From Trichosphaerium sp. ATCC 40318 (taxonomy: Eukaryota; Protista; Tubulinea): a stretch of 64,000 nucleotides of DNA. Every line of letters starts with the position of its first letter. The stretch's first letter is position 1. The translations under genes and the position numbers were made by a program. This document shows, piece by piece, positions 42,475 through 51,512 of the stretch. The stretch lies in contig JALMLS010000390.1 of assembly GCA_038496445.1 (NCBI GenBank), forward strand, positions 1 through 64,000, given 5' to 3'. The notes under the pieces are model-generated. The model was not told the DNA's origin, did no database searches, and saw only the letters and a program-made list of their open reading frames with translations.

Positions 42475-44888
42475 TTAAGCATCTTGATAACGAGTTGATG
42501 TATAAAACTGATAAACCTTTTTCGATAATGAAGGACCAAGCCTTCTTCTGGAAGGACCAGCTCTGAAATCGCTTATCAAGTTCTCTTTGTTTTTTATAGT
42601 ATACATTGATCTATACGCTAATAATAACTCACTTGGTGTTTTATATTGTTCTATTATAGCTGCTGCTTTATCCCCAGACATACCACGTATCTTCATGAGC
42701 TGTTTTGCAAAAACATTTGTTACTGTTAAATAACTACTTTTTGCACTAAAAGAATCGAACTGTTCTATGCTTAAAAGTATATCATGACACTTGTCTTCTT
42801 GTGTAGCGGATGTATCATATTTCTGGTATGTACCAACATACTTTTCGCTTAATATACATGTTATATCTGATAGATAATCGAGTGTTTCTCCCATTGTTTT
42901 TGTTTGTTTAACAAAGAAATTATTAACAACTTGTGTTGATACGAGTGTTGTCTCCACTACTTCTTTAGATACACAAGCACGCCCACGTTGAGAAAAGAAT
43001 TTATCCATATTACCCTACAGTATAAAAAGTAAATATCAATACCACACGTGACATATTACAAAAGGAACCAGAGCTCAAAAAAATTGTTTGTTTACCTCAA
43101 CAAGATAAGTAACATTACTTAACCCACATCTAGCTAGCCGGTACTTTTGTTCTTTATACCTTCCGTCTATAATACTACTACAAAGATCCGCTATAGCAAC
43201 AGTTATTAATACATAACAGCTTACAAAAAAAACAAAGATAATGTACGTACAAAGAAGTTTTCGTTCTACAATAAAGTCAAGCACAAGCTCCATACCACTG
43301 CTCGTTTTACCAACCCACATAACATCACCTAAAGCGAGCTGTCTTACGCTTACATCTACGCCCATAGAAACTAGTTTATCACTAATATACGTCCTGTTCT
43401 TTCTTGACTTTACTTCTCTGTTATCAAGGAGTAACATAACTTTCGTTATTTTATGCTTTGAAATGCCACACCCTGGTCGGCGTTGTATTGTTCTTTTTGT
43501 AGTGTTTACACTTCCAATAGGTGATAACGAAAGGTTAGGAGATATAGGTGATAACGGTAACCTTGCTGGAGGAGCACGAGGACTTTTAGCTTTCTTTGTT
43601 CGTCGTGGTTTTGATGAAGGTGTCTTTGTACTCGCTCTTGGCGCACTCTTTTTACTACTGATGGGTGAGCTTTTCGGGTACGCCATACGTTTTGGTGGTT
43701 GCATATTTACGTCTAATCTATTCATTGAAGAAATTAGCTGTTCATCGCTGTCCTCAGAGCTCCAGCCATCGTTCAGTAAAGGAGATCTGATGTAAGCTCC
43801 ACGACGACGTTTCTTCCTATTGTACGCAGCCTTCCTTTTTGGAGAAAGGTTACTACTTGAAGTTGATTTCATTGCACGAGAAGATTTAGGTTTTGATGGC
43901 TTTGACTTTTTTTTATGAGGTGAAGGCTGTTTTGTTGTCTCTTCTGTTGACAACCCTTCAAAGAACTTTTGTTCTTTTTCGATCACGTCCATGATACCCA
44001 CACCCTTTAATGTAATGAAATACATCCTATTTTCAACCCTATTTTAAGTACGTTAGTACCACGTGTATGCAAAAAAAACCACGTGATTATTTATCAAAAA
44101 AATGGGAAAAAAATCTTGTTTTTGGTCTTACATTACTAGTTCTTTCTTTAGTAGAGTCTTCATAGAATTCCAAGCAGTGTAATATGAATCACCATCTCTT
44201 TCAAAGGATGACTCACAAAAAGGCCGTGCAAGATCAATAAGACTTGCTTTTGTAAGTCCAGATTCGCCACGAGTTTCAGCCCTTAATAGACGTGTTAAAT
44301 AAACGAACGTGAGTGAAACTAATATCAGAGATGTATACCCAGCCATTAACGAGGAGAAACGAGGTGAAGGAAGGCGGCTTTTTTGAAATTTCGAAGATTG
44401 AAAATCGCGCGTTTTATTGTACCTTGAAAGTGCCAATAACATGGCCCAACCACCTGATCTATACCGTGGCATATATTCTCCTTTTTTTTTAACGCGTTTA
44501 GGCGCTTTTTGCTTCTCAGTGTTTGTTTGTTCTTTTTCTTTGTTTCTTACGGGTTTTCCTTGCGTGTTTGTGTTATCAGTAGTATTACCAGCTTTTCTGT
44601 ATTGTTCTAGTTTTTTTGCCAGTTTAGTCACTGTGCCCTTGCCAATACCATCTACTCACATGAGATTATACTTTCACGCGTGTAGTACCCAAAACAAGCG
44701 CTTCTTCTGGCTCTGTAATTTGTAACGGATATTTGCTCATTGATGTCTTTGCCTATAACCTGTGAGCGCTCGCTTTGTATAATTAACTGTACTTTACGGT
44801 AAGTAGATGCCAAATGAACTTTGTTTTGGACGCGCGCTAGGCGTTCCATTTCACCGAGAAATTTAACAAACAGAGCGTTGTTGGACAT
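42475..44888 (-). CDS. MUS81: Crossover junction endonuclease MUS81
   Basis: N-terminal HhH (LDGIGKG), winged helix (YMPRYRSGGWAMLL, YYTAWNSMKTL), ERCC4 (LDNRE, LGDVMW, IVERK, IIDGRYKEQK), C-terminal HhH2. Confidence 0.95.
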
Positions 44889-45056: not shown

Positions 45057-47479
45057 ATGCATGTACTTTTACTACTAGTACTATTGGCTTGCATCGCGTA
45101 CGTTTTATTAAAACAATAATGCGTTAACTACCACAACACTATTTCTAAACCCGCTAGTCCTATCGCGTCGCAAACACACAAAGTAGACACTTGTGAGTCG
45201 TTTAAAATGGATGAAACAGGTACATAACACTCAAAAATTATGACAATTAGTCTACTAAGCGCCCGTAGTGACAATCATGAACTTTACCATGAAAGAGCAC
45301 GAACTGACTCCAAATTTTGATTCTCATATTTGCAAGTACGTCCAAATATAACACAACGCCCCGGTTCGTATTAAACAGTGCGATTTAGAGGATTCGCGTT
45401 ACCTCTAGATAAAACTCTTCATGCCATACGTTTTGACCCTATCATTATACCACACGGCTATGTACATCATATGTCCTTACATTTCTGTGAGAAGGACGAA
45501 GTTTTAACAGACATTGGACAACAGACAGATGTACGTTTTTTGTTTTCCGTTATAAACGCCCACAACGCCATCTTTTATATCAAAATCATCGTACCATCAC
45601 CCTAAAACGCTATTAAAATCAGGCACTTTGATTTTTTTTGTTTCCTCTTTCATAAAATGTTGATTCTCCTAGTGTCTCGAGACAGGTCCAATATGCAAGG
45701 GACAAGTATATGTATGGACTCCGGAGGGTAATAATCCATTGTGCATGCCTGAAGCTGCCGGATACCGTATTGGTAAACCAGCACCATTCATGGTTCTTCG
45801 CAGTAAGTACTTTTTTTTTTTTGAATTTTTAGAATTATTTAAATAAAGGCCTGTAGTCCACTACAAGGCTAATAACAGAGGCGCATTTGGTACCCTTGAT
45901 AACAGTGGTGTCTCTATTTACACTACAACAAACCTACGACAATACGACGCTGGTACGTTAACAAACGAGAGTGACTTTGATTTCTGTCATGGTTTTTTTT
46001 TTGCGGTTTCAACCAATGTTGTACTGCATCCTATTTCCTAAATAATCTCATATGCTTGATAGGAACACTTATTACTGGAGCTGGTGATAGTTTAATACAC
46101 TTAGAACCTAATACAGAGACAACAGTCGACACAAGTTGCCCAGCATCTTGCTCTAGTGAATTGATGCCAGAAAGTGGCATACACGTCTTTGCAGCTATGT
46201 CTATGGCTCATGAACTGGCAACAGAACTAGAGTCTACCATATCTCGTAGTGAAACACAACTGATGCACTTAGAATCAGGTACCACAAATTTTCTAAGATT
46301 CTCAACCTTTTTTTTAGCTGTCTTTCTAGTTACTAAAGTTTTGTTGTAGCAACACGTAATCTCGATGAAAGACACCAAGTAAGGTTCTCTCCACCTACAC
46401 ATATCGAGCTAGGAGATACTTTTGCTACCACGTGCAAATATAACACTAGTGGTACGGCTGCATTGTCTCTTAAACTTCAATCCTAACTATAGATTAGGTG
46501 CCCTTAATGTCGTTACTGGTGGGCCTGGTGCTAGTATGGAGGAATGCTTAACTTATTATTCTTACTATCCTAAAATGGAACACAGAACGTGCTTAGTAAC
46601 AAGCAATAAGAACCCTGCCATTCGTGATGGAAGAGGAACTGTCGAGTACGTTTCTTTTTTGCTGTTTATATGGTTTTGATTACATGATTCTCATGTATGT
46701 TACGTTAGATGTGGGTATAAGAATGTTGATATGAATGAAGACATAGTTCTCGTGCCTTGCGGTCCACACGGTACATTTTTCTTAAACTCTGAGCATGAAA
46801 AAATCAAGAAAAAAAATACAATTTTTGAACTTGTGCTCGTCGAGGAGATGTTAGTGTTATGTTTTGCTGTTCTAACAATACTATAGATATGAAGGGACAC
46901 GTTCAAACCGGTCTCGATCTCTTATCAACAGTCTGTACTGACAGACACTCTTGCTCTTCAGATTGCTTTGCTAGAATGTTGACATGGCTTCAAGCTGATT
47001 GCACTGTAGCTGTTGGTTTCACAAAGCTATTGGAGCTATGTAACTCAGCAACTGAGTTTCCTACAGAGACATGCGCAGAATTTTTTACAGTACGTCGCCG
47101 ATCTACAGTCAAAACGATTAAGTTTTATACCAACATTTTTAGCGCCTTTTTTTATGTATTTGCGACTTGCTTTGCACGTGATACTCAAGAGTTCTGTTCT
47201 TACTATTTTTTATAGCAACTTCGATACTGTCGTGGGCTATGCATTGTTGGACAAGAAGATAAGGACTACTGTGTGGAAGGACCACAAGAAAAAGACGTAT
47301 TTGGATTTACTGGAAAGTGTATTGCTTATGAATGTGAAGTAAGCTATCTTTCTGATACTATCAGAGATTTAAACGCACACAACCTCGCTCATGTTACTCT
47401 TGTTGTATCAATGCTAGCAGCTGGTGTCTTTATAACGATTGGAAGCGTAGCATTGCTGATCTTTGACATTTGTAGTTAA
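45057..47479 (+). CDS. Copper type II ascorbate-dependent monooxygenase-like protein (DBH/MOXD1 family), no DOMON, C-terminal Cys-rich region and TM
   Basis: VHHMSLHFC, PEAAGYRIG, IHY, DNSGV..LRQYDAG, GIHVFA, GDTFATTCKYNT, CLTYYSYYP. Confidence 0.88.
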
Positions 47480-47533: not shown

Positions 47534-50500
47534 ATGCGAATGGAACACATTTCAATGATGACGCCTCCAAATAAAAGTGTTTCAAGTAATAAGGCAAGCA
47601 CACTTTAAGACACGCGTAAAATCGCTTCCGAGTAATTATTTAAGGTTTTCTAATATATATACACTCCGTATGGGGTATTGTACGTATTTCGTGACATGTT
47701 CTCAATTTATTGCGTTTGTCTCATCTAAATACTCTCAGATCCATTCGATGAGATCAGAAAAGATCTTAAGCGCCTATATAGATACTATTGGGATGATTGG
47801 AAACAAGCACGCGAAAATAGTCGTCAATGACGCTCATTTACATTTTAGGGATTCCTTGGCATAAGGTATGTTACGTAGTATGAATTACGCCAATGTTATT
47901 ACAGAAAAGTGTCCGCGTCAGTTCTATTCATGTATTTTACATCTATTGCGCCTGCAATTACGGTAATACAGTAATTTATAGCATACAGCGCTAAAATCCG
48001 AATAGTTTGCTGTATTTCTACAAGAAAAAACGAAAAATCAAATAGGAACAGTTGAGGTACATAAACGGAAGTTGTAAGTTTGTTTTTGACAAGTTTGGCA
48101 GGTCTTATTGTCCACCGCTTTGTGTGGTTTAATATTTTCATGTGCGTTACAACATTTATACTACCGTCGTTTCTTTGATGTCTAATGGCTGCTACAGTGA
48201 TAGCAGGTCAGCCTCTCATTATTGTTGGGTACGAAATCGTATTTATTAACATTTTAAACGAAGTATTCAAAGACTTGTACATCACGTGATTGTTTTACTT
48301 CGCTCAAAATATAAGCGAAACTTTTCGGGGTTTTTTTCTCAACCCACAAGCAGTCCTTGTTTAATTTCTAAAAGTTTTTACATCAAACAAAAAATCACGT
48401 GTTTTTAACCGTTGTATCTAACCAAATATGTGTAGGGTTACAGGACCGGTATGTCGAAAAAAAAACCAAAAATGATTTAAGTTGCTCTCATTATGTTTTC
48501 AATCAATTACGCTTTATTTTTAGAAAACTATGACAACCAAATTTGTTATGGAGTTAGTTATTTTATTTAGTATCTCTTCTTATTGTAGGTTTCAATTTTT
48601 ACACAAACTGTGTTTATTCTCGCTGAGAGGTTTGGATTTCCTTTCCTGGTACAATATTTATTTATTTATTTTCTGTTTTTTTTGTTGAACTCGAAAGTTC
48701 ATCTTCTCATCTCTTACAGCCCTGGTATGCGTGGACTCAAATATGGGCTGGTCTTATGCATCTAGCATTAGCTGCTGCAAATGCTTGTAATGGCGGTAAG
48801 TCTTGAATTTAAAAATTGTGCTGTATTATTTCCAAATGAGTTTTGACAATGTATTTAGTAAAGCTTGTTACGCGATTTAGTTGTGAGATTTTTGGAATGC
48901 TTATTGCCATTATCTATATTGTAAATGCCATTGAAGAGATAGTGGGTGCGTAATTTACCCTCAAAGCCTAATATTTCAAGAAAGAAATCAAAATCAAAAA
49001 CATTTGGTTGAAGTTCTGTTTAGTGAACTTGCGCTTTATTTTTCAAGTTTTTATTGTCTAAGTTCTATTCAAGGATACTTCCAGGACTATACAATAGAAG
49101 CAGGTCTTCTGAGTTTTGTACTTGCTATAGGTAGCACTCATTATTTTTGTTTTGGTTTTTTTTATGGTTACCATTAAATAGGCACGTTTTGGCTTGCTAT
49201 GACTCTTGGTGCAGGTATGAAATCATAACTTACAAACCCTTTCTTATTTGATATAAGCTCGTGAATGGACAGTATTCAGAAAGGCTATTAGAGGCCTTAT
49301 TGCCGAGTATGACGCTAGTCAATATTTTCTTGATGAATAACATTTTTTGTAGTTACGCTGCAGCCACAGCTATTCTAGTTTTCACTATTATCCCATTCCT
49401 TCCATTTTTGAAATCGAATATATCATCATTCATATATCGACCAGCATTTGAGAACCTCACGTGTTCAGGTAAAAACTAATGATAGAAAAAAAATATGTCG
49501 AATACTAACTTAATCTTAGATACTTTGAATGCTACTTTTGTTGAGGAAACATGCTCCTTACTTCCTCCTACAATATTCAATGATACTTTCAATGGTACAA
49601 CAAATGCTACATTGGCACCAACAATGGCGCCAATGATGTCTTTGAATAGTACTTTAAACACAACGATGATGAACATTACTGAGCAAGTTATAACTGGTTT
49701 GGCTTACACCACAGAGAAAATAGATATACCAAAACTAGTTGTTCCGGATACCTTTGAGACTACATCACAAAGGGTGAGTAAAGATATCACAATATATGAT
49801 AATACAGATGGAATTTTTTAAGGACTCTAAGGAAAAAATAAAAAAAAACCTTCAAACTTACTCTTTACATAGGGATGGATTATTAACATATTCGATATCA
49901 GTATCGCTGGCGCATTCTCTGCAATACTTCCAGGGTAATTTACCAAAAAATACTATATTTTAACCATTATCTTCCTAGATTCGTGCTTACTGTATTGTTC
50001 TTTTTCGGTATGTTCATTTTTTTAAAAGTTCTTTTTTTACCATTTACTTGGAGTCTATTTCGCGAACTATTACTAAATTGTTTAGATCATAATGTATCAT
50101 CTCTCCTTTCCCAGAAACCGGACTACAACCTTAAAAAACCTCCAGCTTATAACTGGGATTTTTTTGTTGTTGGGATAACAATCTTTATCTGTGCTATTCT
50201 TGGGTACGTCACATTTGTACTATGCCTTCATCTTTCCTCTAAGTATTCTTATAGTATACCACCAACTAATGGATTAATTCCCCAAGCACCTTTGCATGTG
50301 AGATCACTTGCAAAGATAAAAGTTGGTAAGTTTTAGTACACGTGTTCATAGGATTGTTTTGTAATGGGTGTTTTTCTCATTTTTTCTGTTTTAGTTCAGA
50401 AAGGCGATAAAAAGGTTGAAAAATTCGTTTCAGTTGTTGAAAATCGTGTATCGGGTTTTGCACAGTCTCTTCTTATTGGACTTACATTGATTCCAGTCAT

Positions 50501-51512
50501 ACTACAGGTAAAGATACTAAAACCCGAAAATACAGATTGAAGTAATTTGGTTTTAGGTGTTGGGTTACATCCCTGAGGCTGTGTTGTCTGGCTTATTTTT
50601 ATACATGGGTTTCTCTTCATTCGTTGGTAACCAATTCGCAGAGCGTATGGGTCTTTTCATCACCGATCCAGAGCGAGTTACTGTGAGTATTGGCAAACAA
50701 ATTGAATATTGGAATTTTTTTGTTTTTATGATTTTTTTTGACCTTTTCTTTTTACAGGTTGAGGGTCAGTATCTGAATGCAAATAAATGGCCTAGAGTAT
50801 TCTTTACTCTTATTCAACTCGTTATGGTTGGTATAATATTTGGTGTTACAAGAACAGTAGCAGCAATTGCTTTTCCTGTATTTATTCTATTATTGGTTCC
50901 TCTTAGACTTTACATACTACCTTATTGTATGTCTTTGCCCCATCGCTTGTTTCTTCTTATTGTACTTTTAGTTTTTAAAGATGATGATTTAAATAAGCTT
51001 GATAATGAACGACTTGATTGTGTTGCTCCAGCTGTACGTCATATTTTGCTGCATCAAAAACAAGTAAATTTTTTTGTTCTTTTCATCGAACTCTTCGTTT
51101 TTCACGTGCTTGTTGTCAACAACAAAGATGTTGTTGGTACTGCAATATTTTTATTCTGTGCTATTTGAATTTTGGTTCCGAGCACGTGATGGTGAGTACT
51201 TATAATGAAAAGGATTTTGGAGATGATGCTTCCGATTCTGGTGATAGTGACGATTCACCAGATAGTACCGATTCTACAGATGGAGGCAAAGGAACTCATA
51301 AATCAGCCAATGTTGTATTGTCTACTGTTAATACTCCAAAAACCGCTGCTGGCGCTGATGCAATAGTTGATGTTGAAGAATCTGCTACAGATTATCATAG
51401 CGTCTCTGAAGGAGATGTAGGAAGCGAAAGCGAAAGCGAAAGCGAAGATGACGAAGACGATGAAGATGATGAAGATGAAGATGACGTATCTGTCGATTCC
51501 TATTCAGATTAA
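47534..51512 (+). CDS. SLC4-family transporter, BOR1 (borate exporter) type
   Basis: IRKDLKR..YWDDW, FMYFTSIAPAITF, AGQPLIIVGVTGP, VTRFSCEIFG, FFDHNVSS, YNWDF, PPTNGLIPQAPLH, VVENRVS, IPEAVLSGLFLYMG; acidic tail. Start codon choice uncertain. Confidence 0.92.

Follow-up and report, generated by a model that had tools for sequence, protein, structure and literature searches.

The question raised by this locus is whether a copper monooxygenase of the DBH/PHM type that has exchanged two of the three ligands of its oxygen-activating CuM site, while its electron-accepting CuH site is canonical, still binds and uses copper there, or whether just the fold has survived. The relatives in this family are the copper enzymes making noradrenaline and amidated peptides, and what the Met and both His of CuM contribute in PHM, DBH and TBH has long been debated in copper-oxygen chemistry. 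The gene is found in a stretch of 64,000 nucleotides, referred to here as the window, in which a first-pass annotation had already remarked on the unusual CuM motifs.

The putative copper monooxygenase gene occupies positions 45057-47479 of the plus strand and consists of 12 exons, the model having been derived by three-frame translation and checked mechanically. Its coding sequence of 1542 nt—513 codons and the stop—passes through all 12 exons with zero in-frame stops or frameshifts, and the 11 introns, 40-142 nt in length, are all of the GT-AG type. The locus is a real, intact gene. It should be pointed out here that exons 1-3 and 10 were placed by frame and GT-AG signals alone, exons 4, 5, 7 and 9 being backed by homology (Table 1). 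The splice signals are strikingly uniform throughout 45098-47215, with GTAC at 10 of the 11 donors (seven of them exactly GTACGT) and TAG at 10 of the 11 acceptors.

Table 1. Exons of the putative copper monooxygenase gene and the two CuM motif strands, with positions in the window
Feature	Position	Strand	Characteristics
Exon 1	45057..45097	+	Hydrophobic signal peptide M-H-V-L-L-L-L-V-L-L-A-C-I, including the start codon; mean Kyte-Doolittle hydropathy 3.07; splice sites without homology support
Exons 2 and 3	45158-45219 and 45260-45335	+	Short stretch N-terminal of the core, with a pair of Cys spaced by 33 residues
Exon 4	45389..45530	+	CuH-domain strand with V-H-H-M; Pfam PF01082, E=5.2e-5, profile 25-64
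Exon 5	45673..45802	+	Remainder of the CuH domain, three Cys; Pfam PF01082, E=0.013, profile 83-118
Exon 6	45857..45952	+	(I)-H-Y with the third His of CuH, corresponding to PHM H172; D-N-S-G-V-S vs PHM D-C-S-G-V-S
Exon 7	46063..46278	+	First half of the CuM domain; Pfam PF03712, E=9e-8, 32.2 bits, above gathering score, profile 18-75
M-S-M-A-H strand	46197..46211	+	Met at PHM R240, Met at H242 and His at H244 positions
Exon 8	46350..46451	+	CuM-domain strands; gene model only, no Pfam or PDB match by itself
Exon 9	46498..46645	+	End of the CuM domain, G-G-x-G...M-E-E-C...Y-Y-P...C; Pfam PF03712, E=2.1e-4, profile 116-150
M-E-E-C	46536..46547	+	Met at PHM D312 / DBH E485, Glu at PHM M314 / DBH M487, Cys kept
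Exons 10 and 11	46709-46770 and 46887-47089	+	Cys-rich (8 Cys), no recognisable family
Exon 12	47216..47479	+	Remaining stalk with 5 Cys; hydrophobic stretch (~24 residues), followed by four residues and the stop codon

Concerning the family assignment, exons were scanned singly against Pfam, and exons 4, 5, 7 and 9 were found to match PF01082 (Cu2_monooxygen) followed by PF03712 (Cu2_monoox_C) in colinear order, exon 7 being the only one of the four to exceed the gathering score. The feature search of the ESM Atlas with exon 7 named the copper monooxygenase family likewise. Because four independent exons match in colinear order, the assignment to the DBH/PHM-type fold is secure, and the gene is read here as encoding a complete two-domain copper-monooxygenase core. 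The sequence is nevertheless very divergent, exon 7 reaching only 13 bits against DBH; phmmer searches of the PDB with exons 4, 8 and 9, both whole and trimmed, matched neither PHM nor DBH, and the NCBIfam scan gave zero matches. For the pairwise alignments, five reference stretches of PHM and DBH, 29-32 residues long and with the sequence as in the PDB, were used.

The alignments indicate that the conserved disulfide framework is mostly present, cysteines being kept opposite C390/C394 and C488/C503 of DBH and opposite C114, C227 and C315 of PHM. The exon 8 cysteine is presumably the counterpart of PHM C293, and the cysteine pair of exons 2 and 3 may be compared, as we assume, with C47 and C81 of PHM, which are 34 residues apart. 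The position of PHM C186, a residue that we take to be the disulfide partner of Cys47, is occupied by Asn (45898-45900, exon 6). The third cysteine of exon 5, found in P-L-C-M-P (45739-45741), has no PHM counterpart at that place. The Asn at the C186 position together with the additional exon 5 cysteine suggests that a disulfide in the CuH domain has been rewired.

The CuH site reads as canonical, with the His-His pair, the third His and the adjacent Met, which bears out the earlier claim that its ligands (VHHM, IHY) are intact. The exon 4 motif aligns to V106-M109 of PHM within a local alignment to residues 106-114, so that the equivalents of H107, H108 and M109 are all present, and the H-Y of exon 6 was equated with PHM H172-Y173 because its spacing to D-x-S-G-V-S, 13 residues, is identical in the two proteins. 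The codon for the Ile of I-H-Y is split by intron 5, and this residue hence depends on the splice model.

At the CuM site, two of the three canonical ligands have been replaced and one, the His at the H244 position, has been retained. The two histidines concerned are His412 and His414 in DBH (PMC4846438). In the ungapped alignment of exon 7 with human DBH (4zel chain residues 351-375, a numbering offset by 39 from that of the DBH ligands), the stretch S-G-I-H-I-F-A-S-Q-L-H-T-H of DBH stands opposite S-G-I-H-V-F-A-A-M-S-M-A-H, His412 being changed to Met, the Thr to Ala, and His414 remaining His. The alignment with rat PHM 225-255 gives the same picture, with R240 replaced by Met (46197-99), H242 by Met (46203-05) and H244 kept as His (46209-11); the strand thus reads A-M-S-M-A-H vs Y-R-V-H-T-H in PHM and S-Q-L-H-T-H in DBH. 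The codons ATG-GCT-CAT at 46203-46211 and both ungapped alignments agree with the M-A-H reading of the H-x-H motif given by the first-pass annotation.

The second motif is found in exon 9, aligned ungapped to DBH 440-464 (BLASTP E=2e-6) and to PHM 307-333 and anchored by G-G, two Cys and Y-Y-P. Here, the Met487 of DBH, equivalent to Met314 of PHM, is replaced by Glu (46542-44) and the next Cys is kept, while a Met (46536-38) falls on Glu485 of DBH or Asp312 of PHM, so that E-E-M-C of DBH becomes M-E-E-C, encoded by ATG-GAG-GAA-TGC. Of the earlier reading E-E-C at 46542-46547, the motif stands; these coordinates span just E-C, the three residues occupying 46539-46547. The position of PHM N316 is Leu and the Tyr at the position of Y318 is kept. 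The Met of the E-M-C motif is, in other words, a Glu with a Met two residues earlier, just as the H-x-H motif is M-A-H, and the two CuM strands as read here are M-x-M-x-H and M-E-E-C. Among the four non-His positions 240, 242, 312 and 314, three carry Met, which at the Met content of 3.4% corresponds to p ~1.5e-4 for positions picked post hoc.

Exons 7 and 9 are long and supported by Pfam, and since both motifs are located deep within them, splice choice cannot affect either motif; an alternative exon restoring the canonical motifs was rejected for this reason and because the introns measure just 40-142 nt. Sequencing error was rejected as a source as well, since His to Met and Met to Glu require three base changes each from the canonical codon; both of the replacing residues, Met and Glu, are of ligand type.

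As regards the remaining architecture, about 55 residues precede the core, too few for a DOMON domain, and exon 3 has no Pfam match; since a neighbouring gene begins ~170 bp upstream as well, the DOMON domain is missing, as had been recognised earlier. The adjoining genes—an ERCC4/Mus81-like gene and an HCO3-transporter gene—encode neither DOMON nor PAL, and PAL was also not found by Pfam in exons 10-12. The former, an ERCC4-domain (Mus81-like) nuclease gene on the minus strand (43075-44888), is oriented head-to-head, ~170 bp from the start codon of the monooxygenase, the two genes probably sharing a bidirectional promoter region. The next gene downstream is represented by exons of an HCO3-/anion-exchanger transporter on the plus strand (49983-51168; Pfam PF00955), overlapped by an open reading frame (51018-51512) with an acidic C-terminal part rich in Ser, Asp and Glu.

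The Cys-rich membrane-proximal region noticed at first sight was confirmed, exons 10-12 containing 14 Cys in total and being followed at the very end by the hydrophobic helix. The part separating the core from the anchor (46709-47340) is a module ~130 residues long, in which 13 Cys occur. Relatives of this module were found neither in Pfam (exons 10-12) nor in NCBIfam (exons 11-12) nor in the ESM Atlas (exon 11; the best score of 0.78 being meaningless). The C-terminal segment, with hydropathy of 2.34 over its best 19 residues, would represent a type I membrane anchor or possibly a GPI-attachment signal, and the product is predicted to be a surface or lumenal protein with a signal peptide and C-terminal anchorage.

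Relatives were sought mainly with exon 7. An exhaustive HMMER search with its 71 amino acids against 1.84 billion representative proteins gave 0 matches at E<=1e-3; that collection contains neither a relative exceeding ~40% identity in exon 7 nor the window protein itself, remoter kin being out of reach for so short a query. A word-index search over the length range of 39-124 amino acids, which excludes full-length kin, offered no candidate, none of the 599 pattern matches from a metagenome contig scan was real, and tblastn with every exon against the 64,000-nt window revealed no paralogue. The literature search found no natural CuM-variant members of the family, their absence not being shown thereby. 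The altered CuM site is thus far represented by one sequence.

The protein was compared with the closest known systems. With DBH, MOXD1-2 and tyramine beta-hydroxylase it shares both catalytic domains (PF01082 and PF03712) and the CuH His triad, and exons 7 and 9 are closer to DBH than to PHM, as seen in S-G-I-H-[IV]-F-A and in G-G-x-G...C..Y..Y-Y-P......C. Membrane attachment is also shared with MOXD2, for which it has been described (PMC4125168). Unlike DBH, MOXD and TBH, however, it is without DOMON, exhibits Met-x-His and Glu vs His-x-His and Met at CuM, and possesses an unmatched Cys-rich C-terminus. It resembles the PHM core of PAM in that a DOMON-less core is followed by a membrane anchor and that the CuH ligands, most disulfide Cys and the Tyr of Y318 are kept, whereas it differs from PHM/PAM in the lack of PAL in the gene and its neighbours and in the changes R240 to Met, H242 to Met, M314 to Glu, N316 to Leu and C186 to Asn.

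A further possible parallel is offered by CusF, whose natural Cu(I) site is His-Met2 and in the scaffold of which this set and the His2Met set of PHM have been interconverted by the Blackburn laboratory (PMC12164859). As in CusF, where His-Met2 is found on a beta-strand M-x-M motif, there is an M-x-M-x-H strand with a further Met, facing it by strand register, known here from sequence alone; the folds are unrelated, and the resemblance would be a functional one only. The His-Met2 set is the weaker donor to Cu(I), as reflected by a CO stretch of 2108 vs 2089-2093 cm-1 for His2Met (PMC12164859, Table 1).

To our knowledge, every engineered change of a CuM ligand has crippled the enzyme. In PHM, the variants H242A and M314H have activity of at most about 5%, H242A binding just one copper, and none of the ligand variants tested retained more than about 5% (PMC12164859). 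Replacement of M314 by Ile, His, Asp or Cys left no detectable activity. For TBM, activity was absent from M471H and M471D and scarcely present in M471C, and copper was not coordinated through the substituted side chains of M471D and M471H (PMC2988203). The residue R240 binds the substrate carboxylate in PHM (PMC12164859). Since these mutants lose CuM copper or activity, and since R240 is lost here too, a canonical PHM- or DBH-type hydroxylase appears unlikely.

Several readings of the altered site have to be weighed. That the gene is decaying, its substitutions being the noise of relaxed selection, or that its splice model is wrong, seems very improbable: exons 1-3 and 10 are indeed defined by frame and GT-AG only, and no relatives have been found that would show constraint, but the 1542-nt coding sequence is uninterrupted over 12 exons, GTAC.../...TAG-type signals extend over the whole locus, both motifs are well within exons supported by Pfam, and the fold has retained its Cys framework. 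It is likewise improbable, albeit less so, that the protein is a working monooxygenase or oxidase in which the Met at 46536 would supply the thioether and Met242' or Glu314' (primed numbers referring to PHM positions) would complete a variant CuM able to activate O2. The M-E-E-C motif does resemble E-E-M-C of DBH with the Met and one Glu exchanged, this Met, two residues before the canonical place, is on the same strand face (i, i-2), CuH is intact, and the Tyr corresponding to the substrate-contacting Y318 of PHM is retained in the alignment. A shift of two residues nevertheless means about 6-7 Å along the strand, the PHM ligand variants tested all had activity of at most about 5%, and the weaker donation by His-Met2 (2108 vs 2089-2093 cm-1) argues for poorer O2 activation.

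Paralogues missing catalytic residues are usually inactive, and the second most probable reading, still well below an even chance, is that the DBH/PHM fold persists as a surface module that no longer catalyses and would act in binding, adhesion or sensing, with CuM empty and CuH, if occupied at all, structural. Such a pseudoenzyme would agree with the loss of two of the three CuM ligands and of the substrate-anchoring residue equivalent to R240, as well as with the loss of CuM copper in PHM H242A and of activity upon replacement of M314 or M471. It leaves unexplained, however, why the three CuH histidines, the Met of H-H-M and His244' have survived and why Met has built up at three cleft-facing positions, and the protein has no signalling domain beyond the anchor, its tail consisting of 4 residues.

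The reading we favour, still tentatively and at somewhat below an even chance, is that CuM has been rebuilt into a site rich in thioethers, which would favour Cu(I) and be served by the intact CuH, the metal occupancy, side-chain geometry and function all being deduced from the sequence. It is preferred because the gene is intact, CuH is retained and the replacements are ligand-type residues. In PHM, the residues R240, H242 and H244 as well as M314, N316 and Y318 all face the active-site cleft, and in a beta-strand the residues i and i-2 point to one side. By homology to PHM, the cleft-facing register of Met-x-Met-x-His and Met-x-Glu would bring together a single His, as many as three Met and a Glu, and Met240', Met312' or Glu314' might, if this register is followed, reach the metal together with His244'. 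The cleft would still bind copper, as a Cu(I)-favouring centre of the His/Met type similar to His-Met2 of CusF, and the protein would no longer act as an ascorbate-dependent C-H hydroxylase; it may instead act at the surface by binding copper or in redox reactions, its reactivity having changed. In favour of the rebuilt site, all CuH histidines with their adjacent Met and one CuM His survive strong divergence, two further Met are on the cleft-facing register, and the retention of the electron-transfer site CuH implies a redox partner site. Against it, PHM H242A, which binds just one copper, demonstrates that the site can become empty once that His is gone, and in TBM M471D and M471H there is no coordination through the new side chain. 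The suggestion of the first-pass annotation, that the metal or the chemistry has changed and that this is not simple decay, appears plausible.

There is a slim chance that the protein represents a natural member of the non-coupled two-copper monooxygenase fold with a His/Met2(-Glu) centre in place of His2Met that is still catalytic. If so, it would exhibit a reactivity—in substrate, oxidant or redox potential—unseen in PHM, DBH and TBH, and would provide a natural counterpart of the engineered His/Met series of CusF. The present value of the gene is that of a cheap and well-defined target for expression and spectroscopy: should the protein bind copper or turn over, it would show how the CuM site can be retuned, and should it do neither, it would be a clean case in which an amoeba has put a pseudo-monooxygenase to new use as a module of its surface.
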